From the IMG/VR virus record IMGVR_UViG_3300031963_000006, positions 62,001 through 126,000 of that record: DNA of 64,000 nt. One strand, given 5' to 3'. Below the pieces are notes generated by a model. The model searched no databases, was not told where the DNA came from, and was given only the letters and a program-made list of their open reading frames with translations. The position numbers and the translations under genes are program-made. Positions 1 through 58,704 of this stretch are shown here, piece after piece (the stretch's first letter is position 1; every line of letters begins with the position of its first letter).

Positions 1-668
1 GTATTAATATTACCATAACATCTGCGGCAACTAATACACTTGTATTTAGTGCGGGAACAGGTGGAGCCGGTGCCGTTAGTTCAGTTACTGCAGGCTCAGG
101 ATTATCAGGTAATTCAACAACAGGGGCAATTACATTAATTAATACTCAAGTTCAAGGAATAACAGGAATTACCGCTGGTTCAGGTATTTCGGTTAGTACC
201 ACCGATAATGTAACCACAATAACAAATGGAGTACAAGTTGCAATGCTGACATCCGACCAAACCAGTCTTACAACAACACTTGCGGACATTACTGATTTAT
301 CTTTTGCGGTTGTTAGTGGGAGTATCTATAGATTTAGGTTTGTATTTCATTATGAGGCCTTTAATACCTCAACAGGTAGTAGATGGACTATTAATGGCCC
401 TACCACCAGCATTCTGTCATATAGGTCAATGTATACTTTAGGTGTTGGAACACAAACATTAAACCCAGCCATAAATACTTATGATACACCAGCGACAGCA
501 AACGCATCATCAACCGCAACCGCAGGAAATATTGCGATAGTTGAAGGTGTTATAAAACCTTCGGCCAATGGGACTGTTGTTGCAAGATTTGCTTCAGAGT
601 TTCCGATTGCCGGTGCTTTTATTAGAGCAAAAGAAGGGTCATATGTTGAATATCAAAAAATTTCATAA
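1..668 (+). CDS. Tail fibre-like protein, 5'-truncated (ORF open from window start)
   Basis: The frame of the 243..668 ORF has no stop back to base 3. It is Gly/Ser/Thr-rich with repeated SVTAGSGLSG / ITAGSGISV units typical of fibre shafts, followed by a beta-rich C-terminal domain. Confidence 0.6.
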   Translation, partial: INITITSAATNTLVFSAGTGGAGAVSSVTAGSGLSGNSTTGAITLINTQVQGITGITAGSGISVSTTDNVTTITNGVQVAMLTSDQTSLTTTLADITDLSFAVVSGSIYRFRFVFHYEAFNTSTGSRWTINGPTTSILSYRSMYTLGVGTQTLNPAINTYDTPATANASSTATAGNIAIVEGVIKPSANGTVVARFASEFPIAGAFIRAKEGSYVEYQKIS

Positions 669-944: not shown

Positions 945-2195
945 ATGAACAGAATATTCGTACAAATCGCAAGTTACAGAGACCCTGAGCTCGTCCCAAC
1001 AATTAAAAGTATGTTGGAAAATGCAAAAAAACCAAAAAATTTAAGATTCGGTATTGCTCGTCAATTTCACCCTGAGGACGGTTTTGATGACCTTTCAGAA
1101 TGGAAAAAAGATAAAAGATTTAGAGTTTTAGATATTCCTCATATGGATTCTGAAGGAGTTTGTTGGGCAAGAAATTTAACTCAACAATTGTACGAAGGTG
1201 AAGAATATACAATGCAAATCGATTCACATATGAGGTTTGAAAAGGATTGGGATGTTGAGTTTATTTCAATGATTAAACAACTTCAAAAAGATGGTTACCC
1301 AAAACCATTATTGACAGGTTACGTTTCATCTTTTGACCCTGATAATGACCCACAAGGTCGCGTTAGAGAACCATGGAGAATGGTATTTGACCGTTTTATT
1401 CCTGAAGGGGCAGTATTCTTTTTACCAGAATCAATTCCTGGATGGCAGATGATGACAAAACCAATTCCGGCTCGTTTCTATTCGGCTCACTTCTGTTTTA
1501 CACTAGGAGCGTTTAGTGAAGAAGTTCAACATGACCCTGATTTTTATTTCCACGGAGAAGAGATTTCGATAGCCGCAAGAGCGTATACCTGGGGTTATGA
1601 TTTATTCCACCCTCATAAAGTTCTTGTATGGCATGAATATACTCGTAAAGGTAGAGTTAAACAGTGGGATGATGTTAGAGATTGGGGTAAGAAAAATGAC
1701 TACTGTCACAAAAAGAATCGCTCATTGTTTGGAATGGATGATGAAGGAGAGATGGACCATGGTAAATATGGATTTGGTCCAATCAGAAGTTTAAGAGATT
1801 ATGAAAAATATTCAGGTTTGTTATTCTCAAAAAGAGCAGTACAACAATACACTTTAGATAAAGAATATCCACCAAATCCATATAACTACGCAAGTGAAGA
1901 AGAATGGATGAACGATTTTGCGGCAATATTCAAGCACTGTATTGATGTTGGTTATTCTCAAGTACCTGAAACTGACTATGAATTTTGGGTAGTTGCTTTC
2001 CATGATGAAAATGATGAGACAATTTATAGAAAAGATGCTGACCCTGGTGAAATTAATATGATGATGAATGACCCCGATGGTTACTGCAAAGTTTGGAGAG
2101 AATTTGAAACCTCAAAGAAACCAAAGTATTGGGTAGTTTGGCCATACTCAGTATCTAAAGGATGGTGTGAGAGAATAAGCGGAAATTTATATTAA
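945..2195 (+). CDS. GT60-like protein N-acetylglucosaminyltransferase (Skp1-hydroxyproline GlcNAc-transferase/Gnt1 family)
   Basis: Motifs IFVQIASYRDPEL, YTMQIDSHMRF..WD, SAHFCF, FHGEEISIAARAYTWGYDLFHP and VWHEY match the GT60/PF11397 pattern as I recall it. There is an extra ~100-aa C-terminal domain. Confidence 0.8.
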   Translation: MNRIFVQIASYRDPELVPTIKSMLENAKKPKNLRFGIARQFHPEDGFDDLSEWKKDKRFRVLDIPHMDSEGVCWARNLTQQLYEGEEYTMQIDSHMRFEKDWDVEFISMIKQLQKDGYPKPLLTGYVSSFDPDNDPQGRVREPWRMVFDRFIPEGAVFFLPESIPGWQMMTKPIPARFYSAHFCFTLGAFSEEVQHDPDFYFHGEEISIAARAYTWGYDLFHPHKVLVWHEYTRKGRVKQWDDVRDWGKKNDYCHKKNRSLFGMDDEGEMDHGKYGFGPIRSLRDYEKYSGLLFSKRAVQQYTLDKEYPPNPYNYASEEEWMNDFAAIFKHCIDVGYSQVPETDYEFWVVAFHDENDETIYRKDADPGEINMMMNDPDGYCKVWREFETSKKPKYWVVWPYSVSKGWCERISGNLY

Positions 2196-2201
2196 TTTAA
2201 T

Positions 2202-3146
2202 ATGAAATTAAGAATCCATAATCCAACTAATGAGATTACAAAAAAAAATCGTGATTATAATGTTTTTTGGGATGATTTAACTATTGAACTAAAAAAAAAT
2301 AACGAAGTTTATGAAAACAGATTTTTTGAGCAAGCTCATTTTGATAGATTTAATGTGAATTTTAAATCTTTATCAAAACAAGACGGATTATTAATGTTAG
2401 AATGCGAATATCTCATAGAAAATATTGAAACGGGTGATTTTTTAATTTTTTCAGTGGCAGATGATTTAACACACTGTATATTAGATGAGAGAAGTAACCC
2501 AAAACTAAAAAAAGTTTTTGTTTCTCAATTTATAGACTATAAAATAAAACATCACGTAGATGATTATTTTGAAAAATATTCTCCTTGGATTTATTTTCCT
2601 AGTTTTGATGTTGATTTAGAGCAATTTTACCAAAAAAGAAAGGAGAAAAACTCATTTGTTGATAAATTATTTTTTAGGGGGGCAACCGCACATAGACCAA
2701 TTATTAACCATTTTGATAGAAACATTTTAGAAGGATTAAATCCGATAAATACTAATGACTATTTTAATGAGCTAATAAATTACAGCATTGGTTTATCAAT
2801 TGCGGGGGTCGGAGAATTATGTTATAGGGATGTGGAATATATGGCATTAGGAATTCCATTTATACGGTTTGAGTTCCAGTCTCAATTAATTGAGCCATTA
2901 ATACCAGGACATCATTATATTTCAATACCGTATGATAATTCTATCCCAAAACATAACGAAGTTTTTACAGACAGATTAGGAGAATTTAATCACGCAAAAA
3001 TTATTGAGAGTAAATTTAAAGAAATAATTAACGATAAAGAATATTTAAAATTTGTTGGCGAAAACGCAAGAAAATATTATGAAAAGAATTTATCAAAAAA
3101 ATCAAGATTAGAAAACTCAATTAAATTAATAAATGAAATATTATGA
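2202..3146 (+). CDS. Putative GT-B glycosyltransferase (CgeB/GT90/exostosin-like C-terminal domain)
   Basis: KLFFRG, then YSIGLSIAGVGELCYRDVEYMALGIPFI, PLIPGHHYISI and VGENARKYY: the typical donor-binding C-terminal GT-B pattern. Confidence 0.6.
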   Translation: MKLRIHNPTNEITKKNRDYNVFWDDLTIELKKNNEVYENRFFEQAHFDRFNVNFKSLSKQDGLLMLECEYLIENIETGDFLIFSVADDLTHCILDERSNPKLKKVFVSQFIDYKIKHHVDDYFEKYSPWIYFPSFDVDLEQFYQKRKEKNSFVDKLFFRGATAHRPIINHFDRNILEGLNPINTNDYFNELINYSIGLSIAGVGELCYRDVEYMALGIPFIRFEFQSQLIEPLIPGHHYISIPYDNSIPKHNEVFTDRLGEFNHAKIIESKFKEIINDKEYLKFVGENARKYYEKNLSKKSRLENSIKLINEIL

Positions 3147-5395
3147 AAACTTTAATATATACATCAATATATTCTAACCTATGGGGTACCGAATTTGGAG
3201 GGAGACCTAGCAGAGAATTGCATTATAAATATAGTTTATTATCAATTTTAAAACTTAATCCTGATAAACTAATATGTTTCACTAGCGAGGAAGAACTGGG
3301 TGAGTTAAAATCTTGGTTTTATGAAATAAATAAAATTTCAGAAGATAAATTAGAATTTATTGTTTTTGATTTAACTGAAAGTCGTTTTTTCAATGAAATT
3401 AGAAATTTAAAAAATTTGTCAGAAATTATAACTTCGGATAGATGTTATGAAATACAATATAATAAATTTTTTTGGTTGGAAAACATTACAAATATTGAAG
3501 ACTATGAAAAAATTTATTGGTTTGATGCCGGACTATCCCATGGGGGGTTATTTCCTGAAGAGTATTCTTATGGACAAGGGTTCCAAAAACATTTTTCATT
3601 TACAGTATTTAATGAAGATTATTTAAATTACTTAAATACAATAACTAAAGACAAAATTGTGATTGTTAGTAAAAACAACAGCGGTAGATTTTATTGGAGC
3701 TCCTCAATTCCAACAAAGTATTATGACAGTTATAACAATAGTGAACATATTATTGGTGGTTTTTTTGGGGGAAACGTAAGCTTAATGGTAGAATTTAAAA
3801 ATCAATTTGAAAAAATACTTTTTTCATTATTAACAAATGAATCCGAATTATATCATGAAGAATTGATTATGTCTTTTATGTATTTTAATAATCCTGTACT
3901 GTTTACGCCATTAAAATTTGATGATTGGTATAATAGAAATAATCCAGAAACAAATAGTTTAATTATTAAGTATTTTTATGAAATTTTTAAAATAAAATCC
4001 TCCTCTAAAATTTGCATCGCAACCTCTTGTATTGAGATTAATGGTGGAAGTCATTATGTCGAAAAAACTAAAAATCTTATAGAAAGTTATTTAAAATATA
4101 CAAAATATGATTTAGTCATATTAACTAACCAAATGAAACAATTTGAGGAAATAAAAAATTACCGAGTTAAATTTTTTAATTACTACGATAATTTTAATGA
4201 GCCTTTAACATCGGCAAACTTTTTTAATATGCACCTAAAACGGTTACCAATTAAATTATCATTAAATTTAGGATATGAAATTATTTTTTATAATGATTGT
4301 GATTGTTTTATAACAGGATGGGATAATGATAGTTTTATAGAAAAATGTAATGAAGATTTTGATGTGGCATTTGTTTCCCACGCCAATCCCCAATTGGGTG
4401 GATTGAGGTCTATTTATAAACATTTTCAGGATAAGATAGATATTGAATTTAATGAACTATATTATGATGAATTAGATAACGCTCCAAATCCGGCCGAAAC
4501 TAGAGTCATTTTCAAAAAAAATGAAAAATTAATTAAATTTTTACATTTTTGGGATTTAGTTTCTTATAAAAACAACGATTATTTTACATACCATGATGGT
4601 GTTTATTTTGGAACATCGGCGATATACTCAGGTATGAAAATGATTGGAATAACTCCATTCGATGAATTTACAAAATATTGTAGAATAAGTCATGATGGAG
4701 GCGAATTAGACTATTTTGGTATTAAAATTATAGAAAACACGGTTGATATGGAACAAAATCATACAGAAATTGAAAGTTATGTTCACGGCTCCTTTAATTA
4801 TAAAGGACTTTCTATGTTACAACATAGAAATATAAATGATAAATTTAAGAAATTGTTAGAAACGACTAAACCAAAAAAAATTATAGAAATTGGTACTGAG
4901 TTCGGTGGGCTAACACTTTTGTTACAAGACATTGTACATGAATTAAATTTAGATACTATCATAAGAACTTATGATATAAAAGACCCAGTTTTTCTTTTAA
5001 GTCACCCTGAGTTAAAAGATAACGTTGAAATTATAAAAAAAGATTTATTTTTATATAATCCATTTAGATTATCAGAAAATTCTACCAAAGAACTCAAAGA
5101 GTTTATGTCAGATGACGGGGTTAACATAATATTATGTGACGGAGGGGATAAAAAAAATGAATTCAACGCTCTTTCAAAAATACTGAATGATGGTGATATA
5201 ATCATGTTACATGATTATATTACAGATGAACACGAGTTTCAAGAAAAATTTTTAAATAAAATTTGGAATTGGCACGAATCAAAATTTTCAGATATTGAAA
5301 TCTCAGTTAAGGAAAATAATTTAGAACCTTTTATGCCTGATGATTTTTTACAAGTCGTATGGGGTTCATTTATTAAAAAAAGAAATGAGGGCTAA
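3143..5395 (+). CDS. Three-domain protein: HtrL/YibB-like + GT-A-like (DxD) + class I SAM methyltransferase
   Basis: N-terminal YNKFFWL..YWFDAGL..GGFFGG..HEELIMS (HtrL-like); middle FYNDCDCF (DxD); C-terminal IIEIGTEFGG..ILCDGG..IMLHDY (SAM methyltransferase). ATGA overlap with the upstream gene. Confidence 0.65.
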   Translation: MKTLIYTSIYSNLWGTEFGGRPSRELHYKYSLLSILKLNPDKLICFTSEEELGELKSWFYEINKISEDKLEFIVFDLTESRFFNEIRNLKNLSEIITSDRCYEIQYNKFFWLENITNIEDYEKIYWFDAGLSHGGLFPEEYSYGQGFQKHFSFTVFNEDYLNYLNTITKDKIVIVSKNNSGRFYWSSSIPTKYYDSYNNSEHIIGGFFGGNVSLMVEFKNQFEKILFSLLTNESELYHEELIMSFMYFNNPVLFTPLKFDDWYNRNNPETNSLIIKYFYEIFKIKSSSKICIATSCIEINGGSHYVEKTKNLIESYLKYTKYDLVILTNQMKQFEEIKNYRVKFFNYYDNFNEPLTSANFFNMHLKRLPIKLSLNLGYEIIFYNDCDCFITGWDNDSFIEKCNEDFDVAFVSHANPQLGGLRSIYKHFQDKIDIEFNELYYDELDNAPNPAETRVIFKKNEKLIKFLHFWDLVSYKNNDYFTYHDGVYFGTSAIYSGMKMIGITPFDEFTKYCRISHDGGELDYFGIKIIENTVDMEQNHTEIESYVHGSFNYKGLSMLQHRNINDKFKKLLETTKPKKIIEIGTEFGGLTLLLQDIVHELNLDTIIRTYDIKDPVFLLSHPELKDNVEIIKKDLFLYNPFRLSENSTKELKEFMSDDGVNIILCDGGDKKNEFNALSKILNDGDIIMLHDYITDEHEFQEKFLNKIWNWHESKFSDIEISVKENNLEPFMPDDFLQVVWGSFIKKRNEG

Positions 5396-6281
5396 AATTA
5401 TTCTCCATTGCATTTCAGGATTCGGGGACCAATATGCAAATATTTTGACAGGATACAAAGCATGTAAAGATTTTACTAATTTCGGGTACGAAGTTGAAAT
5501 TTTATGGATAAATAAAAATTTATACTTTTCTCCAGATTTACCTTTAGATTATCTTTATGACTTTAGTCTTTTTAAAAAAATGAATATAAAAATAAATTAT
5601 ATACATAATGAGTCTGAGATTTCAGACGGTTTTTTATATTTAAACACCGGTCAAAACGCAATAAAAATATTTGTTGACAAAATAATCGATGAAATTAATG
5701 AATATGAATTACCTGTTTTTGACTATTTTGGTTTTCGCAGAAACTCTTACTCGTCTTTTTGTCCTGAAAAATTACCTGATTTTGATTATCAGTTTATAAA
5801 TGAAGAAGTACTTGAAATTGGAAATAAGTTTATAGAAAAAAAATCAAAAATTAAATCTGTTCATTTTAGATGTGACGATTTATTTATTCTTTCAGATTAT
5901 GATATTGTACTCGAAGATGTTTTTTATAACTCAATGATTAATAGGGTTTACGAATTTATTGAAATGAATAATAATCAGGATATAATGATTTGTTCTAACA
6001 ATAAAAGTTTAGTAAAACATATTACAAAAAATTTCAAAAATACATTTTATAATACATTTGATAGTGACTTAGATTTACATTATTCATATAATAAAAATTA
6101 TGAAGAAATGATTAATATTAATCACGCTAGACAAATTGTGGCAGAAATGACCTTATTTTCAAGATGTGATAATATTTTCACTGTTAGTAAAAGTCTATCA
6201 AACTTTTTAACATACGGTGTTGCTCATAATCATTATCATAAGGACTGGGATACTAAAATAAAAAATTTAATAACTAATTAA
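5385..6281 (+). CDS. Putative GDP-sugar-dependent GT-B transferase (NodZ/GT23/GT11 fucosyltransferase-like)
   Basis: SGFGDQ (GxG[N/D]Q), SVHFRCDD (HxRxxD) and AEMTLFSRCDNIF..S.S.F motifs. The likely start is the ATG at 5385 (MRAKII), not 5340. Confidence 0.6.
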   Translation: MRAKIILHCISGFGDQYANILTGYKACKDFTNFGYEVEILWINKNLYFSPDLPLDYLYDFSLFKKMNIKINYIHNESEISDGFLYLNTGQNAIKIFVDKIIDEINEYELPVFDYFGFRRNSYSSFCPEKLPDFDYQFINEEVLEIGNKFIEKKSKIKSVHFRCDDLFILSDYDIVLEDVFYNSMINRVYEFIEMNNNQDIMICSNNKSLVKHITKNFKNTFYNTFDSDLDLHYSYNKNYEEMININHARQIVAEMTLFSRCDNIFTVSKSLSNFLTYGVAHNHYHKDWDTKIKNLITN

Positions 6282-6289
6282 AAAATATT

Positions 6290-6889
6290 ATGGATTGTTT
6301 TTCACAAATTGGTCAAGATAAAATAGTTTTAAAATACTTAAAAAATAAACAAAATGGTTTTTTTGTAGATATTGGTTGCGGATATCCTAAAAATATTAAC
6401 AATACTTATTTATTAGAAAGTAAATATAACTGGAACGGAATATCTATCGATTTAAATGATTGTAAAGAGGATAATGGTGAAGGATGGGAAAGTATACGTA
6501 AAACTAAAAGAATTCTTTCTGATGCTCTAACAATAAATTATTCTGATTTATTTAAAAATAATAATTTACCATATAATGTTGATTATTTAAGCTTGGATTT
6601 AGAACCACCAGAATTAACGCTAGAATGTTTATATAAAATACCTTTTGACGAGTATAATTTCAACGTAATCTCATTTGAGATTGACACTGGTAGAGAAGGT
6701 GATTATTACAGAATCTCAAAAAGCCGCGAATTTTTACAGTCTAAAGGTTACACATTAATTGGTTCTTTGTGTGGAGGGCAGGATGACATATATCTACATA
6801 ATTCAATATCTCACTTAAAAAATGAATTTAAATTTGAGGACCCATCAATTGAATGGACAACTTGGCCCCAATCTACATTATATAAATAA
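6290..6889 (+). CDS. FkbM-family methyltransferase
   Basis: FSQIGQD..GFFVDIGCG...NNTYLLE...WNGISID and VDYLSLDLE...FNVISFE. Confidence 0.75.
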   Translation: MDCFSQIGQDKIVLKYLKNKQNGFFVDIGCGYPKNINNTYLLESKYNWNGISIDLNDCKEDNGEGWESIRKTKRILSDALTINYSDLFKNNNLPYNVDYLSLDLEPPELTLECLYKIPFDEYNFNVISFEIDTGREGDYYRISKSREFLQSKGYTLIGSLCGGQDDIYLHNSISHLKNEFKFEDPSIEWTTWPQSTLYK

Positions 6890-6907
6890 ACATTAAAAAT
6901 ATTAAAC

Positions 6908-9277
6908 ATGATTTTTCAAAATAAGATAACTAAAAAAAGTAATTTAGTAGATAACGATAGTTTGTCGGTTTATAATAATGAATGGGTTGCCCAACAAAAT
7001 CATAACGCATTCGAAATTTTCTTTTATTTCATAAAGGAGACCAGACCTAAAAGAATTTTAGAAATAGGAACTGCTCTAGGTGGATTTACTTATTTTTTAA
7101 AAGATACTTGTAATTCTCTAAATATAGATTGTGAAATAATGTCATTTGATATAAATGAAAATCATACATATGAAAAATTAAAAGAATTTGGAGTTGATGT
7201 GAGCGTTGAAAATATTTTTGACTCAAATTATACTACAGTTTCACAAAGTGTTATTGACTTTATTCAATCTGAAGGAACTACAATTGTATTGTGTGATGGT
7301 GGTAATAAAAAATTAGAATTTAATATTTTGTCAAATTATTTAAAAGAAAATGATTTTATATTAGGACATGACTATTCATACGATAAAGAATATTTTGATA
7401 ATAATATAAATCTTAAAATTTGGAATTGGTTAGAATTAACTGAAAAAGATATTGAGGAACCATGTAATAGAAATAATTTAGTTGATTACAGAAGAGATTT
7501 ATTCCAATCTGTTGTTTGGGTATGTAAAATGAAATCTGATGAAAAAATAAATGAACCTAAAGAAAATGAGAATATAGAAATTATGGAACCTGAGAACTTA
7601 AGTCACACAACTTTTGTAACAGGATTGTGGAACATTAAAAGAGATTCATTAACTGAAGGATGGTCTAGAAGTTTCGACCATTATTTGGAAAAATTTAATG
7701 AATTATTAAAAGTAAATGTTAACTTAATTATTTTTGGAGAAAAGGAATTAGAGTCTTTTGTTTGGGAAAGAAGAAGTAAATCAAACACGCAATTTATAGA
7801 AAGAAGTGTAGAATGGTTTAAGTCATCTGTACCGTATGAAAAAATTCAAGAGATTAGAAACAATCCTGAATGGTACGGTCAGTCAGGATGGCTTCCCGAC
7901 TCAACACAAGCGAAATTAGAATGGTATAATCCATTAGTCATGTCAAAAATGTTTTTACTACATGATGCAAAAATAATGGACCAATTTAATTCGGATGAAA
8001 TGTATTGGATTGATGCAGGATTATCAAACACGGTTCATCCAGGTTATTTTACTCACGATAAGGTACAAAATAAACTGAGTAAGTATTTTAATAAATTTAG
8101 TTTTGTTTGTTTCCCATACGAAGCGTCAAATGAAATTCATGGGTTTTCTTATCCTAAAATAAATGAATACGCCGGTTCAAATGTAAATTTGGTTGGTAGA
8201 GGAGGATTCTTCGGAGGACCTAAGGAAAGTATTTCTGAAATTAACTCAATCTATTATTCGATGTTGATTAATACCCTAACAGATGGATATATGGGCACTG
8301 AAGAATCAATATTTTCGATATTATTATACAAGTATTCTAATTTAATTAACTACTTTGAAATCGAAGATAATGGACTTATGGGTAAATTTTTTGAGGATTT
8401 GAAAAATGATACTTTAGAGGTCAAAACTAAACACACATTACCAAGTGGAGAACCTGTTAAAGATATTAGTAAGACATCACTATATGTGATTGGTTTTAAT
8501 AGTCCAAATCAACTAAAAACATTAATTCAATCTATGGTTGAATATGATGAGGATTTTATCAAAAAACCAAAGAAATATCTTTTGAATAACTCAACGGATA
8601 GAAGTACTGATTCGGGTTACGAAGAATTGTGTGCAATGTATGATTTTGAAATAATTAATCCTGGTGAAAACTTGGGTATATGTGGGGGTAGACAATTTGT
8701 TGCCGAACATTTTGATAAGACAGACTCAGAATTTTATTGGTGGTTTGAGGATGACATGTTTTTCTATCCAAAAAAAGGAGAAGTATGTAGAAATGGGTTT
8801 AATAGATACGTGAGTAATTTATACGATAAAAGTATGAGAATTGCTCAATCTGAGAATTTTGATTTTTTGAAGCTCAATTTTTCTGAGTTTTTTGGTGATA
8901 ATTCGGTGCAGTGGTCATGGTATAATACGCCGCAACATGTTAGAGAAGAGTTTTGGCCTCAAAATACTAAATTACCTCAAATGGGATTAGACCCAAATGC
9001 TCCGAGAACTGTCTTCAAAAATATTAAATCTTTAGATGGAGTTCCATATGCCGATGGAGAAATTTATTACTGCAACTGGCCACAAGTAATTTCTAAGAAA
9101 GGTAACCAAAAAATGTTTTTAGACACAAAGTGGGCACACCCATACGAACAGACTTGGATGTCGTTTATGTATCAGGAAACTAAAAAGGGTAACTTAAATG
9201 GTGGAATATTATTGATGACTCCTACTGAGCACAACCGTTTTGAACACTACGCGGCCGAACTTAGAAAAGAAAGTTAA
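6908..9277 (+). CDS. Three-domain protein: SAM methyltransferase + HtrL/YibB-like + GT2-like glycosyltransferase
   Basis: ILEIGTALGG..VLCDGG..ILGHDY; then SKMFLL..YWIDAGL..GGFFGG..GTEESIFS; then LLNNSTD..NLGICGGRQ..WWFEDDM. Confidence 0.65.
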   Translation: MIFQNKITKKSNLVDNDSLSVYNNEWVAQQNHNAFEIFFYFIKETRPKRILEIGTALGGFTYFLKDTCNSLNIDCEIMSFDINENHTYEKLKEFGVDVSVENIFDSNYTTVSQSVIDFIQSEGTTIVLCDGGNKKLEFNILSNYLKENDFILGHDYSYDKEYFDNNINLKIWNWLELTEKDIEEPCNRNNLVDYRRDLFQSVVWVCKMKSDEKINEPKENENIEIMEPENLSHTTFVTGLWNIKRDSLTEGWSRSFDHYLEKFNELLKVNVNLIIFGEKELESFVWERRSKSNTQFIERSVEWFKSSVPYEKIQEIRNNPEWYGQSGWLPDSTQAKLEWYNPLVMSKMFLLHDAKIMDQFNSDEMYWIDAGLSNTVHPGYFTHDKVQNKLSKYFNKFSFVCFPYEASNEIHGFSYPKINEYAGSNVNLVGRGGFFGGPKESISEINSIYYSMLINTLTDGYMGTEESIFSILLYKYSNLINYFEIEDNGLMGKFFEDLKNDTLEVKTKHTLPSGEPVKDISKTSLYVIGFNSPNQLKTLIQSMVEYDEDFIKKPKKYLLNNSTDRSTDSGYEELCAMYDFEIINPGENLGICGGRQFVAEHFDKTDSEFYWWFEDDMFFYPKKGEVCRNGFNRYVSNLYDKSMRIAQSENFDFLKLNFSEFFGDNSVQWSWYNTPQHVREEFWPQNTKLPQMGLDPNAPRTVFKNIKSLDGVPYADGEIYYCNWPQVISKKGNQKMFLDTKWAHPYEQTWMSFMYQETKKGNLNGGILLMTPTEHNRFEHYAAELRKES

Positions 9278-9861
9278 ATTATAACTTTATTACTTTTTTT
9301 CAAATTATCTTCAGCCCAAAGGGGCTGAAGATTTGTATAATGACATAGTTTAAAAATTTCATCCTCAGTTTTTGCAATTGACAAAGGGGTTATATGGTCA
9401 ATATGGATATATTGACCAACTAACTCCCAACTCATACCCTCAGTAAATTTAGATTCTATGTATTCCTTTAAGAATTCAGGGGTACATCCTATAATTTCAA
9501 ATGTTTTTCCCTTTTTAAAAGATTTCTTTGATTTAAGAAATAGTTGTAATCTGGCTCTCATAATGACCTTCAGTCTATATATTATATCGGTCTTATAATT
9601 ATACATAGCCCATTCTTTCTGATAAGTTGGATTTTTCTCGAACCACTTTTTTTTAGACGTTTTAACCTTTTCTTTGTTTTTGTTAACATATTTTTGTTTT
9701 ATAAGGTTAATTTTTTGTTTGTTTTTTTTATTGTAAATTACTGATAATTCATTAGAACAAATTTTACACTCAGGTCTTTTTCCATCACGACTTTTTTTTC
9801 TGTTGTAAAACTCACAAACCTCTTTTTCAATACCACATTTACTACACACTTTTGTTTCCAT
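9274..9861 (-). CDS. Free-standing HNH endonuclease with N-terminal CxxC...CxxC zinc-binding domain
   Basis: CSKC...CKIC at the N-terminus; HIDHITPLS...HYTNLQPLWAEDNLKKSN HNH core. Inverted relative to its flanking genes. Confidence 0.8.
   Translation of the reverse strand: METKVCSKCGIEKEVCEFYNRKKSRDGKRPECKICSNELSVIYNKKNKQKINLIKQKYVNKNKEKVKTSKKKWFEKNPTYQKEWAMYNYKTDIIYRLKVIMRARLQLFLKSKKSFKKGKTFEIIGCTPEFLKEYIESKFTEGMSWELVGQYIHIDHITPLSIAKTEDEIFKLCHYTNLQPLWAEDNLKKSNKVII
9307..9334 (+). terminator. Perfect 11-bp hairpin inside the HNH coding sequence; candidate terminator for the glyco cluster
   Basis: ATCTTCAGCCC-AAAG-GGGCTGAAGAT followed by TTG, 30 nt after the 9277 stop. The U-tail is short. 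Confidence 0.4.
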
Positions 9862-9997
9862 AGTATTCTCTAAGTAACTTGTTTATCAAGGTTGACTTTT
9901 TAATTTTATCTTTAACCATTATATCAAATAGTTCTCGGTCTAAACTAATACCGAATTTAACTTTACAATCTTCTGTTTGTTTTTTTGGTCGTCCCAT
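9842..9997 (-). CDS. Small ribbon-helix-helix-like DNA-binding protein (51 aa), not in the ORF track
   Basis: Hand translation: MGRPKKQTEDCKVKFGISLDRELFDIMVKDKIKKSTLINKLLREYYGNKSV*. It has an alternating beta-strand followed by two helices and overlaps the HNH start by 20 nt. Confidence 0.6.
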   Translation of the reverse strand: MGRPKKQTEDCKVKFGISLDRELFDIMVKDKIKKSTLINKLLREYYGNKSV

Positions 9998-10109
9998 ATT
10001 ATATAAGTATTTCAAAAATATAAAAAAGTTTCACTATTACTAAAGATTTGAAACAACATATTTATTATCGTCTATTTCTTAAATAGAAATATTTATAAGA
10101 TAAAATAGA

Positions 10110-12224
10110 TTGATGGAATTCTTAATTAAGAAAAATGCAACTCTCCCACTTTTAAAGTTACAGGTAGTTAAGGACGGTAGAAGTGACTACAATAATTTTA
10201 TGAAACTTATTGAAGTTTCATCAATCTATTTTTCTATGACGGACCTTGAGACGGGAATTCCAAAAATAATGTCTCGTCCTGCAGGTTTTGTTGAAAAAAC
10301 TTTTGATGACCCAAATGCAGAAACTGAGTATTATCTATACTACCAATTCACTTCTACCGACACCAATATGGAAGGTAGGTTTGAGGGCCAGTTCATGCTT
10401 AGAAACTCTGAAGGAGTTTTGATTCTACCAATTAGAGAAAAATTATATATTTCAGTTCAGGAATCATTTATTGCTAATGATTTAAATTATGAAAGTTGTT
10501 ATGTTTCAGAATTTCCATGTTGTATTGAATCACCTATTGAACCTATTTGTCCTCCGTGTCCTACTTTACCTCCTCCATCATCAACACCACAACCTACACC
10601 ATCGGTAACTCCTAATTATTGTAAAATATTTCCATCCGAAGAGCAAGATATATCAATATTTGACGACTCTGAGGCCTCAGTATATCCCGTTACATTTTTA
10701 GTTTATGGTATAACTAATGCCATAGATAGTATAAGTTTAACTTTAAATGGATATAGTCATACTTATGTTGGCGATGTTGGTATGATATTATTATCACCGG
10801 ATGGTTTAAGATATTCTATAATAACAGGGAGGAAAGGGTCTGTTTATGGTATAGATAACGGAACTGTCACGTTAAGCACATTGTCAAATACTTTATGGGA
10901 CGGACACTCAACCGGAAATTTTATAAATGACCCTTATGTTTATGAAACAGTTTTATTTGGTTCCCCATGTCCATATCAGTTTATCCAAGGTCAGTCTACT
11001 TTGGACTTGAGTGTTTTTATAACTGAGACTCCAGCTGAATATGCAAATGGTTTATGGACTTTATATATTCAAGATTTCGCTCCTGAAGACGAAGGTTTTC
11101 TACAGTCAGCGACCTTGACCATATGTGACTCTGGAATTCCAAGAACACCAACACCCACACCGACTCTAACCCGTACCCCAACATTAACTCCTGGGTTGGT
11201 TATAAAAATGAATTTATTTGGATTAATAAGTCCTGGTTCAGTTAATATAGAATATTATTTGGTTATAGATAAGCCATTTTTTGATGATATAATATTAGAA
11301 TTTACTCATGTCTTATTATCGTCAGGTGGTGAAATAGAGATTACATCTCAAATAGAAATAGATAAAGAGAAAACATCAAATGTATTAACATTAACATTAG
11401 ACTATGATTTTGAGTCACTTAGCGGAACCAGTTATTTTAAAAATGTTAATATTATACCTGCCGAATATTCTAACAAATTCATAGTTACTGAGATTGTAGA
11501 ATTCAATTATCCGACACCTACACCGACACCTACCCCAACTCCAACACCTCAATGTAACTTATATTTGGCGACTGATTTTGATTTTGATTATGTTCTTATT
11601 ACTGAGGACTTCCAAAATTTAGTATTAGAAGAAACCTGTAATTTAATTAACATAAACGCAATTTATTATGAAGTTTTAGGTGGCATTTTATTTACGTATA
11701 CCGTAACTTCATCATATCCGGTCGATACCGACGTTGAGGTATCGTTCCAAAACATTATTGGTTATGGATACGAATCTGTACAGTTATTTAATTTGTCACT
11801 TGTGATTTCAGCAGGAACTCAATCGGCTCAAACTTTATTCTACGATTTTACAACTCCATATTCAAGTTATTATGGGGTATCGGCGTTTTACGAGGTTGGA
11901 ACTTCGGTGACGGGATATACTTCATATGGTTACAGTGTTTATACAAATTATAGTTTTGTACCTCCGATTAATAACCCGGTTATCCCTCCTGCTCCGACAG
12001 ACTTAATTCCAACTTCTTTACCTCCAACTCCTACACCGACTAATACTCAAACATCAACTAATACACCAACCCCAAGTGTTACGAATACTAATACTCCAAC
12101 TACTAGTGAAACCCCAACTCCAACCCCTACCCCTACATCAACACCTCCGGTACCACCTTTGACAATAATAGATACATTGACAGACCCTAATGGAGAAAAT
12201 CTAAAAGGTGTTATTGTAATTTAA
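10110..12224 (+). CDS. Virion/fibre-associated protein with Pro/Thr-rich linkers and a proprotein-convertase P-domain-like module
   Basis: Four PT-rich tracts. The segment SHTYVGDVGMILLSPDG...NGLWTLYIQDFAPEDEGFLQSATLTI resembles the P-domain. TTG/ATG start after a TATTTATA motif. Confidence 0.55.
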   Translation: MMEFLIKKNATLPLLKLQVVKDGRSDYNNFMKLIEVSSIYFSMTDLETGIPKIMSRPAGFVEKTFDDPNAETEYYLYYQFTSTDTNMEGRFEGQFMLRNSEGVLILPIREKLYISVQESFIANDLNYESCYVSEFPCCIESPIEPICPPCPTLPPPSSTPQPTPSVTPNYCKIFPSEEQDISIFDDSEASVYPVTFLVYGITNAIDSISLTLNGYSHTYVGDVGMILLSPDGLRYSIITGRKGSVYGIDNGTVTLSTLSNTLWDGHSTGNFINDPYVYETVLFGSPCPYQFIQGQSTLDLSVFITETPAEYANGLWTLYIQDFAPEDEGFLQSATLTICDSGIPRTPTPTPTLTRTPTLTPGLVIKMNLFGLISPGSVNIEYYLVIDKPFFDDIILEFTHVLLSSGGEIEITSQIEIDKEKTSNVLTLTLDYDFESLSGTSYFKNVNIIPAEYSNKFIVTEIVEFNYPTPTPTPTPTPTPQCNLYLATDFDFDYVLITEDFQNLVLEETCNLININAIYYEVLGGILFTYTVTSSYPVDTDVEVSFQNIIGYGYESVQLFNLSLVISAGTQSAQTLFYDFTTPYSSYYGVSAFYEVGTSVTGYTSYGYSVYTNYSFVPPINNPVIPPAPTDLIPTSLPPTPTPTNTQTSTNTPTPSVTNTNTPTTSETPTPTPTPTSTPPVPPLTIIDTLTDPNGENLKGVIVI
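11511..11549 (+). repeat. (Pro-Thr)n coding repeat with a near-tandem 12-nt unit CCGACACCTACA/C
   Basis: ccgacacctacaccgacacctaccccaactccaacacct encodes PTPTPTPTPTPTP. Confidence 0.85.
11961..12158 (+). repeat. Long mucin-like Pro/Thr coding tract
   Basis: Encodes PPINNPVIPPAPTDLIPTSLPPTPTPTNTQTSTNTPTPSVTNTNTPTTSETPTPTPTPTSTPPVPP. Confidence 0.85.
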
Positions 12225-12266: not shown

Positions 12267-15200
12267 ATGGCGAATATTAAGATATCTCAATTAGTTTTGG
12301 CAACACCAGGTCCTGAGAGTATTTTTCCTTTCACAGATAATGGTGCTACATATAAAGGATACGTTTCGGGACTAACCACTAACTATATTGAGGTTACTAA
12401 AAATGAACTTGAATCTTTAATTCAAACATCAAGTTTAATTCCTGGTTATTTCTATATAATAAGTGGGGTTGATTTTGACCTATATGGTGGAACAACAATA
12501 ATTTTAGAGTCAGTTTCCCCAAATAAATTATCTGAGAAAGGTGTTGGTTTATTTTATAATCCAAAATATGACCAAACTATCGACGGATATGGAATTTGGA
12601 CGAGACACATGACTCCTACATTCGATAGTATTAGTGGAGGGATATTTACACCAAATGAAACTGTTACATGTGATTTGGGTGGAACTGGAACTTATATATC
12701 TGATGAATTAATAGAATGGGTAAATGGGGATTGGAGTGGTGCGACCTCAATTACTGGAAACACAAGTGGTGTTATTGCAACTATTAGTCGTTCATTGACT
12801 CCTGAATATGTATTTGGTGATGAAAATTCCAGCTCGGCTATATGGGGAGGATTTTTATGGGTAAATCAAGGTGGTGATATTTCTAATGAGTCCGTTGGAA
12901 TTGGTGATGGTTCATCGATATACAGCGGATTTACCGAAAATAGACCAATATTTCCATCAACATTGTCAATAGACACTGGTATAGAACAATTTTTAGATAA
13001 TGGAAGTGGTCAATTAGTCGGAAATGGTGGAGGTACAGGGACCACAAATTATGATACCGGTGAATGGTCTTTAGAGACTACAGGTTCTGTAAGTTCTGGT
13101 TATAGTATAACCGCATCATATATGGCATCGACCGTTGGTGTTTCATTAAATAAGTATGAATTAAGTTCTACGTGGTCTCCCATTCCGTTTAATGATTTTA
13201 ACTATAATTTAGTTGCCGACGAAATAATTTATGATTACGAAAAAGATAAAATAATTTACAGAAGAGATGGATTTGGAAATGAAGTTTCTTGTACGTATCA
13301 AAGTATAAAACAATTTGAAATAGACAATTATGGTAATCCAATTAAGGATTTTCAGTGGGGTAATAATCAAACAAATTGGGGTAATTCTACAGGGTTATTT
13401 TTATTTAATGATGTTCCTGATTTAGGAAGTGATATTTTGTATGGAGGTAACGATTTATTCGATACTGGTAACATTTTAAATACTGAATTATTCACCCAAA
13501 TACCTTACACCCACACTCAAATGGTTGACCCACCTGTTCACAGTAATCAAGAAACTTCTCCATTTTATTTTACTTTAAACGGAATTGTTTTATCTGGCGA
13601 TTCTTATTTCGGGGCAGCGTCAAGTTATTTTACAAATCTTTATCCCGGATTATTTGTTATGATGGCTACAAATACTTCTGTAGATGAGTTTTACATTAAT
13701 GGTTCACTTGGTACAGATTGTGATTCTGTTTTAGATTCTTATCAACAAACCTACACAGGATTCTCTGAAACTTATACCGCGTTTGTTAAAAGATATTTTA
13801 ATAACACAAATAATGAACCATCAAACAACCATATTATAATTGTTAATAGTGATGGTACGGGAATAAATCATGATTATAGTAGCGGAGGATGTGATAGTGA
13901 TTTTGACCAAATATCGGGTTTAACGGCATCTAGTGTAACCAAAATTTATTATTTACTGATGTCATTATCACCCATAGATAAGATAAGTGACAATGAGATT
14001 GATAATATCGTAAGTATTTTTCTATCACTTGTTGATGGGTATTTTATCGAGGAATCTAAATTTAATATAGACACTCAATATACTAATATTACTGGTTTAT
14101 TTAATAATAGTCAAACCACAACTAAATACGGTATAATGGGTAATAAAATAACAGACAGTTATCTTGATTGCTTAAATTTCCAAGGAGGGTTTATTTGGGA
14201 TAATAATTTAACTCAAAGTAGTGTTTTCTCTGAAAACTATTTCGCACCAACTAGAAACTCAAATTTTTCCTACAATAATGTTATCTCAGAAACAATATTT
14301 TCAGATAATATATTTAGTCCTAGGTCTGAATTTCAAAATTGTGAAATATCAAACTCGGTAATAAATAGTAATATACTTGGAGGTTATAACACAAATAATA
14401 CTTATATTGCGGACAGTGAAATATTTTTAAGTGTTGTTTATAACAATCAATTTCACAATACTAATATTAATAAAATAAATTTGAAATTTGGTTCTGAGTT
14501 TTCTAATAATATAACTGACAACTCTAATATTGGTTCAAATAATATAATTACAGATAGTTTGTTAAATGATAATATATTTATTTCAACTAGTATTGAAGGT
14601 AATGAAATCATAGATGATTCATCCATAGAATTTAATAATTTATCAATTTCAAATATTGCATTTAATACAATACATAATTCATCGATATCCAATAACACAT
14701 TAATTAATAATGGAAATATTTTATATAACACATTAAGTCAAATTTCAATTATTGATTATAATTACTTATCGGCAAATACTTTTGTACAAAATAACACTTT
14801 AAGTCAGAATTCATCGATAGAATATAATTCAGGATTCACTAATTCTTATATTGAATATAATAATCTTTCATTAAGTTATTTATCAGGAAACACGTTAGAT
14901 GATAGTTCTTTTATTTCCGAAAACGAGATAACCCAAACATCTGAAATATCAATTAATACTATTTTATCATCATCTTTTATTAGTAATAATATAGTAAAAA
15001 ATCAGTCAAATATAATTGATAATACTCAAAATGGTGGTTCAGAATTAAGATTAAATGACCTAAACAATAGTTTTATTTATAATAATACTCTTAGTGCCAG
15101 TACAATTAATCAAAATTATTTAAATTCATTTTCTGAAATACTATACGGTGTTTTAAATAATTCAACATTTGAAAATAATTTACTAAAATATTCGTCACTT

Positions 15201-15714: not shown

Positions 15715-15990
15715 ATGAGACCAAATAGAAGAAATACTCAAAATCAAAGCGAAGGTTTAATAATCTCTTTACCAACTGAGGTTGTTGTTAGAGAAATACC
15801 TGCAGTTCAAATTAAAACCTCAACAATTGAAGTTCTTTCTGTAGAAGACCTATCAAAACAAAGAAAAATTGTTGCCAATACAAAAGAACTTGGTCCAGTT
15901 ACCCTTTGGGAAAATCAAATGTATGATAGAATAGGTCAATGGACTGATGTTGACATTGAAACAAGATTAATTGAATTATTTTTAAAGTAA
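15715..15990 (+). CDS. Hypothetical protein (91 aa)
   Basis: A-rich leader and TAATG coupling to the downstream protease gene. Confidence 0.7.
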   Translation: MRPNRRNTQNQSEGLIISLPTEVVVREIPAVQIKTSTIEVLSVEDLSKQRKIVANTKELGPVTLWENQMYDRIGQWTDVDIETRLIELFLK

Positions 15991-21796: not shown

Positions 21797-21833
21797 CAAG
21801 ATATTTTATAGATATAAATATCTCATTTTAGAC

Positions 21834-58630: not shown

Positions 58631-58704
58631 TAATTTATTTATCTAAATAATGGTCTATCTTTTTTTGAAAATAGCAAATAAACTATTTATAAAAAAGGTT
58701 TTTC

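Follow-up and report, generated by a model that had tools for sequence, protein, structure and literature searches.

The window analysed here, a 64-kb stretch of DNA, belongs to the genome of a low-GC jumbo myovirus, which shows synteny with Xanthomonas phage XacN1 and is very common in metagenomes. Near the start of the window lies a glycan island (positions 945-9277) of six tightly packed plus-strand genes, located by the list of open reading frames (ORFs) at 945-2195, 2202-3146, 3143-5395, 5340-6281, 6290-6889 and 6908-9277, with intergenic gaps of 6, 8 and 18 nt and overlaps at the other two junctions. The island is flanked by a fibre-like gene on one side and, on the other, by the gene for a 704-aa protein with four Pro/Thr (PT) tracts. 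A first-pass annotation had described six contiguous, tightly coupled genes between a fibre gene and a PT protein, and the ORF coordinates confirm this; its statement that nucleotide-sugar synthesis genes are absent from the window likewise agrees with the annotated ORFs, among which we find none. A minus-strand gene between the island and the PT gene (9274-9861), which that annotation did not mention, encodes an HNH homing endonuclease (phrog_1035, endonuclease VII, E=2.5e-18). It is not a member of the system, and beyond the window's own genome (L003-L005) we see it in just three of the related loci (L021, L035 and L038). No transmembrane segments or signal peptides are predicted in any island enzyme or in the PT protein. 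Any modification would therefore be cytoplasmic, and its product could leave the cell only by lysis.

The first gene of the island (945-2195) encodes a GT-A glycosyltransferase of the GT60 family, which we propose as the initiating polypeptide glycosyltransferase. The earlier assignment of this protein to GT60 was right: it matches Pfam PF11397 ('GlcNAc') with E=9e-66 and a score of 223 bits (cut-off 21), and phrog_24687 covers its full length (E=9e-164). The enzyme is found in every one of the 80 related loci from viruses, where its identity is 69-100%. Neither D93-S94-H95 nor the H230-R234 block varies among 19 homologues, which extend to identities as low as 47%. A search of the PDB with this enzyme gave no match, so that the comparison of active sites stands on the conservation of motifs alone. 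The eukaryotic members of CAZy GT60 (TcOGNT1 of T. cruzi; Gnt1 and pp-alpha-GlcNAc-T2 of Dictyostelium) share PF11397 and the GT-A metal-binding motif with the phage protein, whereas the latter, encoded by a bacterial virus, adds a conserved C-terminal domain of ~115 aa (residues about 300-416). Gnt1 is a soluble cytoplasmic enzyme, and characterised GT60 enzymes prime the hydroxyproline of Skp1, as the Pfam family description also records. The product of TcOGNT1, another characterised member, is GlcNAc-alpha1-O-Thr, formed on mucin-like proteins (PMC9472816).

The last gene of the island (6908-9277) encodes a 789-aa protein. Its residues 1-215 (6908-7552) form a mobile CmcI/FtsJ-like methyltransferase module (FtsJ E=8e-5, CmcI E=0.01): in many relatives the counterpart is a separate ORF of ~209 aa, and in some a single in-frame stop precedes the next domain. 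The remainder belongs to a conserved core. Residues 230-510 (7595-8437) are an HtrL/YibB-family GT-A domain, which matches PF09612 (HtrL_YibB) over residues 233-482 (E=1e-14) as well as TIGR02192 (E=8e-16) and is kept in 78 of 82 loci at 48-69% identity. A second GT-A domain, marked by an E-D-D motif, occupies residues 520-789 (8465-9277), and for it Foldseek returns POMGNT1, GnT-I, TarP and GalNAc-T2. The AlphaFold model of residues 230-789 is confident (pLDDT about 90), and as a whole it matches tandem GT-A enzymes such as LH3, COLGALT1, Mimivirus R699, LARGE1 and K4CP (E from 2e-11 to 1e-7). Among isolated phages only four have full-length relatives of the second GT-A domain, and all four also have GT60.

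Between these two conserved genes lies a variable cassette. Its first member, a 314-aa protein (2202-3146), had been called a GT-B enzyme, a call for which we find no support in Pfam, NCBIfam, the PDB or any annotated homologue; its 282 homologues are lineage-restricted, some of them being fusions to FkbM methyltransferase domains, and a counterpart is present in 21 of 82 loci. The 750-aa protein that follows (3143-5395) begins with an HtrL-like GT-A domain (residues 1-285; 3143-3997), a paralogue of the HtrL domain of 6908-9277 (hhalign probability 99%, E=8e-18) and homologous to XacN1 ORF332 at 28% identity. Its middle domain (residues 287-545; 4001-4777) is related to XacN1 ORF331 and is probably also GT-A: D99 and D101 of a D-x-D motif are invariant in 23 homologues, and COLGALT1 matches weakly at this motif (E about 1.3), while a Pfam search with 40 homologues gave no match. 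The C-terminal domain (residues 546-750; 4778-5395) resembles CmcI and rhamnosyl O-methyltransferases, that is, SAM methyltransferases. It scores under the gathering threshold against RMNT_CmcI (E=3e-4) as well as Methyltransf_24 (E=1e-3), one of its homologues carries PF04989, and it is a paralogue of the N-terminal methyltransferase domain at 6908-7552 (E=2e-47), which likewise matches CmcI/Methyltransf_24 weakly.

The next gene (5340-6281) encodes a fucosyltransferase-like protein (GT23/GT37-like), whose homologues begin at its residue 16, so that the real start is probably at 5385. When a profile of 46 representatives is compared with the PDB, the top four matches are fucosyltransferases (E=4e-4 to 7e-3), including FUT4 (9nqh, E=4e-4), AtFUT1 (5koe, E=5e-3) and NodZ (2hhc, E=7e-3), and the protein has an H-x-R-x-x-D motif with R177 invariant. 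The gene is rare, being found in only 3-6 related loci. Homologues of the 199-aa protein at 6290-6889 are also found in 3-6 loci; this is probably an FkbM-type methyltransferase, given a faint match to Methyltransf_21 (E=0.086) and a SAM motif I that matches an FkbM-annotated protein. Among the domain calls, we consider secure those of GT60 (PF11397), the two HtrL-like domains and the one further GT-A domain; those of the fucosyltransferase-like protein and the two paralogous CmcI-like methyltransferase domains are moderate, and those of the D-x-D domain and the FkbM-like methyltransferase are weak.

The proposed acceptor is the PT protein itself (10110-12224, plus strand; homologues point to the ATG at 10113 as the start). 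It consists of a conserved 140-aa N-terminal beta-sandwich followed by variable beta-sandwich modules, with the PT tracts as joints. The structural model reaches a pLDDT of about 85 over residues 1-120 and of about 90 over residues 365-465, and a P_proprotein domain is detected (E=1e-6). A sequence scan places the tracts at residues 148-165 (PT/S; 10551-10604), 345-360 (PT; 11142-11189), 468-482 (a pure (PT)n run; 11511-11555) and 634-686 (PT/TN, the longest; 12009-12167). Within the 64-kb window PT tracts are confined to this protein, and the window's proteome contains 5 PT windows, compared to 0.015 expected from 200 shuffles. The N-terminal domain is present in 65 loci at 37-80% identity, always between HtrL-GT-A and a DNA polymerase gene. 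Its fold matches in BFVD are phage proteins, including BppU N-terminal-domain proteins (E about 1e-3) and tail-fibre proteins; in the PDB it finds only generic beta-sandwiches, with E no better than 2e-3.

The PT gene sits among fibre-like genes. Positions 1-668 (plus strand) encode the C-terminal part of a fibre-like protein, whose full ORF of 948 aa (L004:6878-9724) is among those listed for this genome ahead of the window; its C-terminal motif is common to two neighbouring fibre-like ORFs. On the far side of the PT gene, a 1144-aa protein (12267-15701, plus strand) may be fibre-like as well, judging by its repetitive sequence alone; tblastn detects no counterpart in 77 related loci from other genomes, and the loci from its own genome end before the gene. 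Neither of these two proteins has a match in Pfam or PHROG.

Our comparison set comprises about 160 related loci, of which about 80 are viral contigs. In the 80 viral loci the genes for PT protein(s) come first, followed by GT60, a cassette that ranges from 21 bp to 6.3 kb, HtrL-GT-A, the N-domain of the PT protein and DNA polymerase; that is, a conserved core surrounds a hypervariable cassette. A conserved initiator and core with variable extension and capping enzymes, as first proposed, fits these data. Upstream of GT60, a conserved 70-aa N-domain with a PT protein is found in 50 loci, and in most of the loci listed it ends within about 100 nt of the GT60 start; in about a quarter of relatives the downstream gene consists of the N-domain only (122-144 aa), without a PT extension. 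The PT proteins of relatives contain papain-like protease, Laminin_G_3, LRR, DUF285 and beta-propeller modules, with the tracts as links between lectin, LRR and protease modules. The cassettes hold GT10, GT25, GT2, GT34, GT7C and PLOD-GT domains and many methyltransferases, along with carbamoyltransferase, DegT aminotransferase, sugar nucleotidyltransferase and GNAT, which is, as far as family content can indicate, the profile of a complex decorated oligosaccharide.

The first-pass annotation had suggested checking for co-occurrence of GT60 and PT-repeat proteins across related genomes, and the result is strongly positive. PT-tract ORFs are found in 74 of 77 related loci, and PT-tract residues number 11.09 per kb in the GT60 loci versus 0.11 in tail-sheath loci of the same lineage, a ~100-fold difference among loci that are not phylogenetically independent. 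Counted as ORFs, the densities are 12.65 versus 0.84 per 100 kb, again for loci that share ancestry. Such co-location could mean only that both sets of genes share a hypervariable host-interaction region. In bacteria, nine loci from Gemmatimonadota contain a PqqD-domain protein, then GT60, then HtrL-GT-A, and these PqqD-domain proteins have tails of 54-132 aa with a P+T+S fraction of 0.35-0.63. In eleven loci, mostly from Burkholderiales and one from Dyella, the GT60 homologue has a VgrG spike at a distance of 4.5-8 kb; several of these spikes have C-terminal tails rich in PT, and in five loci the tails contain (PT)n runs of about 35-130 residues. As a raw count, a PT ORF lies within 8 kb in only 22 of 80 bacterial GT60 loci. 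Taken together, these gene neighbourhoods suggest independent recurrence of the GT60/PT-protein pairing in bacteria.

XacN1, which has been studied experimentally, is a true relative across its ORF334 to ORF330 region: the gene order is syntenic, GT60 is 47% and HtrL-GT-A 40% identical to the proteins of the window, and ORF332 and ORF331 correspond to the first and second domains of the 750-aa protein. It differs in carrying a carbamoyltransferase instead of the methyltransferase and fucosyltransferase modules. At least two protein bands of XacN1 virions are periodic acid-Schiff-positive, that is, glycoproteins, for which its authors proposed the phage glycosyltransferases as responsible; the paper does not give the protein identities of the bands, nor does it recognise GT60, the HtrL-GT-A partner or the link to PT linkers (PMC5852040). 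The about 18 PT-tract ORFs of XacN1 are dispersed over the genome and not clustered with the enzymes.

This scatter, together with the lack of protein names for the Schiff-positive bands, would suit a system that glycosylates virion proteins outside PT tracts (structural proteins such as those of the capsid or sheath), in the manner of mycobacteriophages and chloroviruses, with the PT genes as mere neighbours in a variable host-recognition region. Known phage and giant-virus systems do modify capsid or tail-tube proteins (PMC12619734, citing Freeman 2023; PMC9614988), and the GT-GT-methyltransferase layout of the 750-aa protein is also that of PBCV-1 A064R, which serves the glycan of the major capsid protein (PMC9614988). 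We nevertheless regard targets of this kind as unlikely, given the 100-fold PT enrichment beside the cluster within the lineage, the GT60/PT pairing in unrelated bacterial contexts without capsid genes, and the activity of a characterised GT60 member on Thr of mucin-like, Thr-rich proteins (PMC9472816).

The cluster adjoins DNA polymerase and replication genes, and the C-terminal GT-A domain has TarP among its fold matches. Both facts would be compatible with a phage that hypermodifies its DNA with sugars against restriction, for example on hydroxymethyl-pyrimidine; the DNA-glycosylating GT-A enzymes of phages are numerous and diverse, with TarP among their closest structural relatives (bioRxiv 10.1101/2023.12.21.572611), and XacN1 has a thymidylate-synthase-family gene in another part of its genome. 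However, TET/JBP dioxygenase, C5-methyltransferase or thymidylate-synthase-like genes are usually adjacent in the DNA-sugar pathways described, and the DNA GT-A class has DDD where GT60 has D-S-H (bioRxiv 10.1101/2023.12.21.572611). The annotated ORFs of the 64-kb window include no such dioxygenase, methyltransferase or synthase gene, and in the bacterial operons the partners of GT60 are PT-tailed proteins rather than DNA-modification genes. Moreover, seven GT-like domains with O-methyl, carbamoyl and amino-sugar tailoring go far past any DNA glycan known to us. DNA is, in our view, a very improbable target.

The product might also be a non-protein glycan, made or remodelled during infection: host LPS core, capsule or some other polysaccharide of the envelope, or an oligosaccharide, either free or lipid-linked, which might for instance prevent superinfection or change the surface of the cell. 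HtrL/YibB originates from the LPS-core region of enterobacteria, the LPS and lipooligosaccharide families GT25, GT2 and GT9 occur in the cassettes and XacN1, and LPS-core transferases are likewise soluble or peripheral, without transmembrane segments. On the other hand, neither the window nor the Pfam survey of the cassettes yields a flippase, polymerase, ligase or polyprenyl-phosphate transferase. The initiator, which is conserved, comes from a family that modifies polypeptides, such a model gives the association with PT proteins no part to play, and glycoproteins are present in XacN1 virions (PMC5852040). We therefore find this explanation rather implausible, and hold DNA or a host envelope glycan to be the less likely kind of target.

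The explanation we favour, with slightly more credence than doubt, is cytoplasmic O-glycosylation of PT linkers in multi-domain proteins that are attached to fibres or the baseplate and encoded on both sides of the cluster. The analysis shows the identities of the domains, a conserved core with a variable cassette, and the association with PT proteins; we infer the acceptor, the donor, the identities of the sugars, the order of action, the location of the PT proteins in the virion and the biological benefit. Soluble GT60, using a nucleotide sugar made by the host, would place the first sugar, by analogy with characterised members an alpha-GlcNAc, on Thr (or Ser) of the PT tracts of freshly synthesised proteins, either ahead of virion assembly or in the course of it. 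The HtrL and GT-A tandem enzyme would then build a conserved inner core on this sugar, and enzymes of the hypervariable cassette would add a strain-specific outer part; here these would be the second HtrL-like domain, the D-x-D domain, the fucosyltransferase-like protein and the 314-aa protein. Finally, the CmcI-like and FkbM-like O-methyltransferases would cap the glycan. The 'mucin-like virion coat' first envisaged overstates the case: the tracts connect modules of lectin, LRR and protease type in proteins that look like fibre- or baseplate-attached appendages, not a capsid coat.

Such a system would have partial precedents. The mycobacteriophage systems of the Che8/Corndog type also rely on cytoplasmic phage glycosyltransferases, O-linked glycans on virion proteins and gene sets that vary between related phages, and methyltransferases are part of them too. 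They use other GT families, however, and their acceptors, according to a later summary, are the C-termini of capsid and tail-tube subunits (PMC12619734), whereas we propose PT linkers inside fibre-like appendage proteins; the window's cluster is also far larger, with about seven GT-like domains in a conserved core and a variable cassette. Chlorovirus PBCV-1 (A064R, A061L, A111/114R) likewise encodes soluble multi-domain enzymes, its glycans differ between strains, A064R joins GT, GT and O-methyltransferase in one chain, as does 3143-5395 (PMC9614988), and a second methyl cap comes from a separate methyltransferase. In PBCV-1, a eukaryotic virus, though, the glycans are N-linked and sit on the major capsid protein, with no GT60 initiator, and the likeness shown is one of layout.

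Secreted bacterial and fungal cellulases have O-glycosylated PT-rich linkers between folded modules, which are thereby stiffer and protected from proteases. The enzymes there are cellular ones of the secretory pathway or periplasm, from other families, whereas here they would be cytoplasmic and encoded by the virus. The outcome for the phage could be linkers that are stiff, protease-resistant and antigenically variable, and that keep adhesin, lectin or hydrolase modules off the particle. Glycosylation of phage virions is known already; our analysis suggests a new variant of it, in which GT60 is combined with PT linkers.

Six tightly packed ORFs run along the + strand from 945 to 9277, in the layout that the first-pass annotation had described for a virion O-glycosylation cluster. 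They are flanked by a fibre-like gene upstream and, downstream, by the 704-aa protein rich in Pro/Thr (PT) tracts (10110-12224, +) that was proposed as the acceptor; an HNH endonuclease gene on the opposite strand also lies between the enzymes and this PT protein. We regard the cluster as real and, almost certainly, as a glycan-building island. The HNH homing endonuclease gene (9274-9861, -) overlaps the last transferase gene by 4 nt and, outside the window's own genome, occurs at only three related loci, so that it looks like a recent mobile insertion. Between the PT gene and the DNA polymerase gene, which are less than 1 kb apart in many relatives, stand a gene for a 1144-aa repetitive fibre-like protein (12267-15701, +), with no counterpart in 77 related loci of other genomes, and a stretch comprising a small ORF and a peptidase, phrog_16701 (15715-16673).

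The source genome of the window measures about 321 kb (L004, IMG/VR, IMGVR_UViG_3300031951_000002), and G+C content ranges from 26 to 37% across the window. Encoded here are a 1195-aa tail sheath, a family B DNA polymerase, helicases, an SSB, a UvsX-like recombinase, DnaB, ribonucleotide reductase, baseplate wedge proteins, a T4-type baseplate protein and several giant ORFs. Among isolated phages, the GT60 gene of the window (945-2195) has relatives only in the jumbo myoviruses XacN1, Xoo-sp13, CM1 and RAS14, at 45-48% identity, and XacN1 shares the gene order of the window: glycosyltransferase cluster, DNA polymerase, tail sheath, giant proteins, ribonucleotide reductase. At the DNA level, the whole cluster has no match in the phage collection. 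In a protein-database search, GT60 matches more than 7,000 protein clusters, of which the top 120 are 76-92% identical to it; this jumbo-phage lineage is very abundant. Elsewhere in the window, 21017-21799 (-) encodes a phage-borne Fe/Mn superoxide dismutase (Sod_Fe_C, E=1.5e-40), located between a helicase gene and a gene weakly similar to a head-tail adaptor, and an ORF of at least 1769 aa without a Pfam match (58693-64000, +) continues past the window end.

The assignment of 945-2195 to GT60, on which the original proposal depended, is borne out by a match to PF11397 far above the curated threshold (E=8.9e-66; 223.2 bits against a cut-off of 21), in two stretches that reach profile position 349 of 352. 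D93-S94-H95 and the block H230-E-Y-T-R are invariant in 19 GT60 homologues, down to 47% identity. By analogy with GT-A enzymes in general, we infer that these are the catalytic residues, and the conservation of the motifs implies a presumably active enzyme. Sequence and profile searches of the PDB returned no usable match, and the 120 protein matches listed, all near-identical metagenomic proteins, include no distant relative. TcOGNT1, a CAZy GT60 member, forms GlcNAc-alpha1-O-Thr on T. cruzi mucins (PMC9472816). For the phage enzyme, a transfer of alpha-GlcNAc from UDP-GlcNAc to Thr or Hyp is putative, and the gene neighbourhood points to PT tracts as the acceptor. One related locus, L079, carries two full GT60 copies (325-1572 and 8076-9332), 69% and 68% identical to that of the window, plus a C-terminal fragment (10951-11088).

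The second principal enzyme is the 789-aa product of 6908-9277, in which a methyltransferase domain is followed by an HtrL domain and a GT-A domain (the last two, residues 230-789, are referred to here as HtrL-GT-A). The HtrL domain matches PF09612 with E=1e-14 and 55 bits (cut-off 24.1). Against TIGR02192 it scores 58 bits, far under the equivalog cut-off of 265, and we therefore consider it a member of the family and not a YibB equivalog. AlphaFold models both the HtrL domain and the second GT-A domain at a pLDDT of about 90. In Foldseek searches the two together match tandem GT-A enzymes, namely LH3, COLGALT1, Mimivirus R699 and LARGE1, as well as chondroitin polymerase and heparosan synthase, and the C-terminal GT-A domain alone matches POMGNT1, GnT-I, TarP and GalNAc-T2. 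The GT-A fold of HtrL-GT-A is thus confirmed at the level of predicted structure. The N-terminal methyltransferase has a poor predicted fold, and the whole protein finds only a marginal PDB match, to CmcI (E=0.14).

The remaining genes of the cluster are less uniform. The 750-aa protein (3143-5395) begins with a paralogue of the HtrL domain of the 789-aa protein (residues 1-285; E=8e-18), and the CmcI-like methyltransferase domains of the two proteins are likewise mutually paralogous (E=2e-47). The middle domain of the 750-aa protein is weakly assigned, by an invariant DxD alone; neither this domain nor the whole protein has a usable match in the PDB, and in the protein database the domain finds only unannotated relatives of the same lineage. 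For 5340-6281, a profile of 46 representatives has fucosyltransferases as its top four PDB matches (E=4e-4 to 7e-3), and R177, the arginine of the HxRxxD motif, is invariant in all 46 sequences. Since the scores are modest, we call the product fucosyltransferase-like and assign it to no specific CAZy family. The product of 6290-6889 is marginally FkbM-like. Thus, where the first-pass annotation counted about seven GT-like domains, four are secure, one is moderate and one is weak; 2202-3146, which it had called GT-B, is left without support, with no match in Pfam (E up to 10), NCBIfam or, by profile, the PDB, and with 282 homologues that are all unannotated relatives of the same lineage, none of them similar to GT-B enzymes. 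Two of its three methyltransferase domains have reasonable support, and the third, in 6290-6889, is weak.

We compared the window proteins by tblastn with 80 related viral loci. A fixed frame emerges, consisting of GT60 (69-79% identity outside the window's own genome), HtrL-GT-A (48-69%), the N-domain of the PT protein, that is, its first 140 residues (37-80%), and then DNA polymerase. The cassette of variable genes between GT60 and HtrL-GT-A ranges in length from 21 bp to 6.3 kb. According to a Pfam survey, its 130 non-redundant ORFs include transferases of the GT10, GT25, GT2, GT34, GT7C and PLOD types, numerous methyltransferases, sugar nucleotidyltransferases and HAD phosphatases, together with a carbamoyltransferase, a DegT aminotransferase and a GNAT. 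The conserved frame, together with this variety, means that the island combines a constant initiator and core with a periphery that exchanges rapidly. The methyltransferase modules are mobile: in several relatives, the counterpart of the N-terminal methyltransferase of the 789-aa protein has an ORF to itself. At L026, L060, L064, L065, L066 and L070, the methyltransferase and HtrL-GT-A are in-frame and split by a single stop codon; the window has the fused form. Either a fusion or a fission of genes could account for the difference, or possibly programmed readthrough.

We now turn to the candidate acceptors. The PT tracts beside the cluster are far above chance, with 5 tract windows observed versus 0.015 expected. 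The anticipated co-occurrence of GT60 with PT-repeat proteins in related genomes also holds: ORFs with PT tracts are found in 79 of 82 loci, and GT60 loci contain 11.09 PT-tract residues per kb, compared with 0.11 in a control set of 79 tail-sheath loci from this lineage. Two classes of PT ORFs can be distinguished. The downstream class is the protein with the 140-aa N-domain; the upstream class, present at 50 loci, is an array 5' of GT60, often of paralogues with a common 70-aa N-terminal domain. Because PT proteins carry modules such as a papain-like protease, Laminin_G_3, LRR/DUF285, a beta-propeller and Fib_succ_major, we interpret the tracts as linkers in modular proteins of extracellular type. 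Neither PT proteins nor enzymes have signal peptides or transmembrane segments. Extreme TPTxTPT arrays occur at L010-L016 (e.g. L012:7103-8458) and at L076:13023-20744, where a 452-aa protein has more than 25 tandem units and a 2574-aa protein has dozens; these arrays suggest rapid repeat expansion at the DNA level.

In the window, the PT protein sits among fibre-like genes. AlphaFold predicts the whole protein with a mean pLDDT of 52, poorly outside two domains, and the PDB fold matches of the model are generic Ig and Calx-beta folds. The N-domain is modelled as a beta-sandwich, resembling many small phage proteins, and is similar to BppU N-terminal-domain and tail-fibre proteins at E of about 1e-3; its fold matches in the PDB are generic, and it has no usable PDB match by sequence or profile, no significant PHROG family and no tblastn match in isolated phages. 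The first-pass annotation had envisaged a mucin-like virion coat. We reject this picture, given that PT tracts are nearly absent around the tail sheath and that PT proteins are built like appendages. Our best single reading, which we favour slightly over its alternatives taken together, is that the PT linkers of proteins attached to fibres or the baseplate serve as acceptors; what the enzymes do, which sugars they use and whether their targets sit in the virion are all inferred.

It is important to ask whether the products of the cluster might instead modify DNA. Phage glycosyltransferases that act on DNA are typically encoded beside TET-like dioxygenases, C5-methyltransferases or thymidylate-synthase homologues, and DNA-glycosylating GT-A enzymes have an active-site pattern, R...DDD...EDY/F, in common with JGT (bioRxiv 10.1101/2023.12.21.572611). 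The annotated ORFs of the 64-kb window include no 5-methylpyrimidine dioxygenase, C5-methyltransferase or thymidylate-synthase-like hydroxymethylase, and the Pfam survey of cassette ORFs likewise found none of these partners. Set against the DDD pattern by reading of motifs, GT60 has D-S-H and the C-terminal GT-A domain has E-D-D, the latter with TarP-like fold matches. Overall, we consider it likely that the product of the cluster ends up on protein, as opposed to DNA or an envelope glycan.

Compared with known phage virion glycosylation, the cluster differs in its initiator family, in its proposed type of acceptor and in its core-plus-cassette organisation, and our literature search found no earlier description of GT60, of an HtrL-GT-A partner or of PT-linker glycosylation in phages. 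A064R of PBCV-1 is an example of a single viral polypeptide, of GT-GT-methyltransferase layout, that builds a virion glycan and caps it (PMC9614988), and the aquatic jumbo phages termed 'moraphages', which may or may not be the window's lineage, are reported to have four core GT orthogroups (PMC12619734). Of the window's phage and its relatives, only XacN1 has had virion glycans shown, by Schiff staining; the window itself contains the GT genes. XacN1 virions contain at least two Schiff-positive protein bands, not identified, and its authors suggest that ORF328 and ORF334 are responsible for the glycoproteins (PMC5852040). ORF334 is the GT60 homologue. We had expected PT proteins to be clustered beside the enzymes in XacN1 as well, which proved wrong: co-occurrence holds there only at the level of the genome. 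Its PT-tract proteins are numerous and dispersed; one of 3313 aa follows the baseplate wedge genes, and three large ones adjoin the sheath. An array of six proteins of 400-750 aa that are paralogues of one another, ORF232-237 (L167, record 124048-133104), has PT tracts at about residues 215-290 of each, and these are candidates for the Schiff-positive bands.

Scanning a single genome for each prokaryotic species reveals GT60 homologues across many phyla, at 37-73% identity. At about 35 loci an HtrL-GT-A gene lies near GT60 on the same strand, in most cases directly downstream. In nine Gemmatimonadota loci, a gene for a PqqD-domain protein (E=1e-7 to 8e-4) directly precedes GT60, and the C-terminal 54-132 residues of this protein are 35-63% Pro+Thr+Ser. 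The full operon (L183-L195; e.g. L184:6040-9269 and L190:6455-9269) comprises a P-loop protein, the PqqD-domain protein with its PT/ST-rich tail, GT60 and HtrL-GT-A; the P-loop protein is HPr-kinase-like by sequence reading and has a weak P-loop match in Pfam. In RiPP pathways, the usual role of PqqD domains is to bind the peptide substrate, so the operon may be a glycosylated peptide or protein system. At eleven other loci, mostly of Burkholderiales with one of Dyella, a VgrG spike gene lies 4.5-8 kb from a GT60 homologue (L224:10267-13131 (-), L229:13049-15520 (-), L201, L231, L233, L240 and L242, among others). Two of the VgrG proteins were checked in Pfam (Phage_GPD, E=2e-91 and 2e-90), and several VgrG proteins end in a PT-rich C-terminal tail; in five loci there are (PT)n runs about 35-130 residues long. 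The GT60 homologue linked to VgrG is shorter, consisting of the catalytic part only (Ralstonia, Achromobacter, Trinickia, Paraburkholderia, Dyella). Judged by gene context, these bacterial settings, independent of the phage one, lend qualitative support to the same kind of acceptor. The closest 'bacterial' matches to GT60 (61-73% identity; L169-L178 and L194) lie mostly on contigs from MAGs of Bacteroidota, Saprospiraceae among them. Several of these contigs are short, have a low G+C content and also carry an HtrL-GT-A gene; they may be mis-binned phage, or hint at a Bacteroidota host.

A broader proposal, which we put forward tentatively and consider rather doubtful, is that GT60 and HtrL-GT-A form the core of an unrecognised cytoplasmic mucin-type O-glycosylation pathway for PT linkers, shared by bacteria and viruses. 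Under this proposal, the two-enzyme core would decorate both the fibre appendages of jumbo phages and the PT-tailed PqqD-domain proteins of Gemmatimonadota, the short GT60 alone would decorate the (PT)n extensions of Burkholderiales VgrG spikes, and the hypervariable cassette of the phage would diversify the outer glycan, like an O-antigen locus. The narrower reading, of PT-linker glycosylation by the phage cluster, is open to direct test, since cultures exist of XacN1 and of the Stenotrophomonas phages CM1 and RAS14.

If this narrower reading is correct, the orphan HtrL/YibB family would gain a role, and the system would offer bacterial glyco-engineering a compact, soluble, cytoplasmic O-glycosylation toolkit with PT repeats as a simple peptide tag. 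The bacterial operons suggest that the same chemistry is used on cellular proteins. For the phages themselves, virion glycosylation would no longer be confined to a few actinobacteriophages but would include jumbo phages of Gram-negative and aquatic settings, and the frequent PT linkers of phage fibres would gain a function. An extremely common lineage of aquatic jumbo phages would then place complex, strain-variable O-glycans on its host-recognition appendages, using machinery related to the initiating enzymes of mucin-type glycosylation in Dictyostelium and the trypanosomes.
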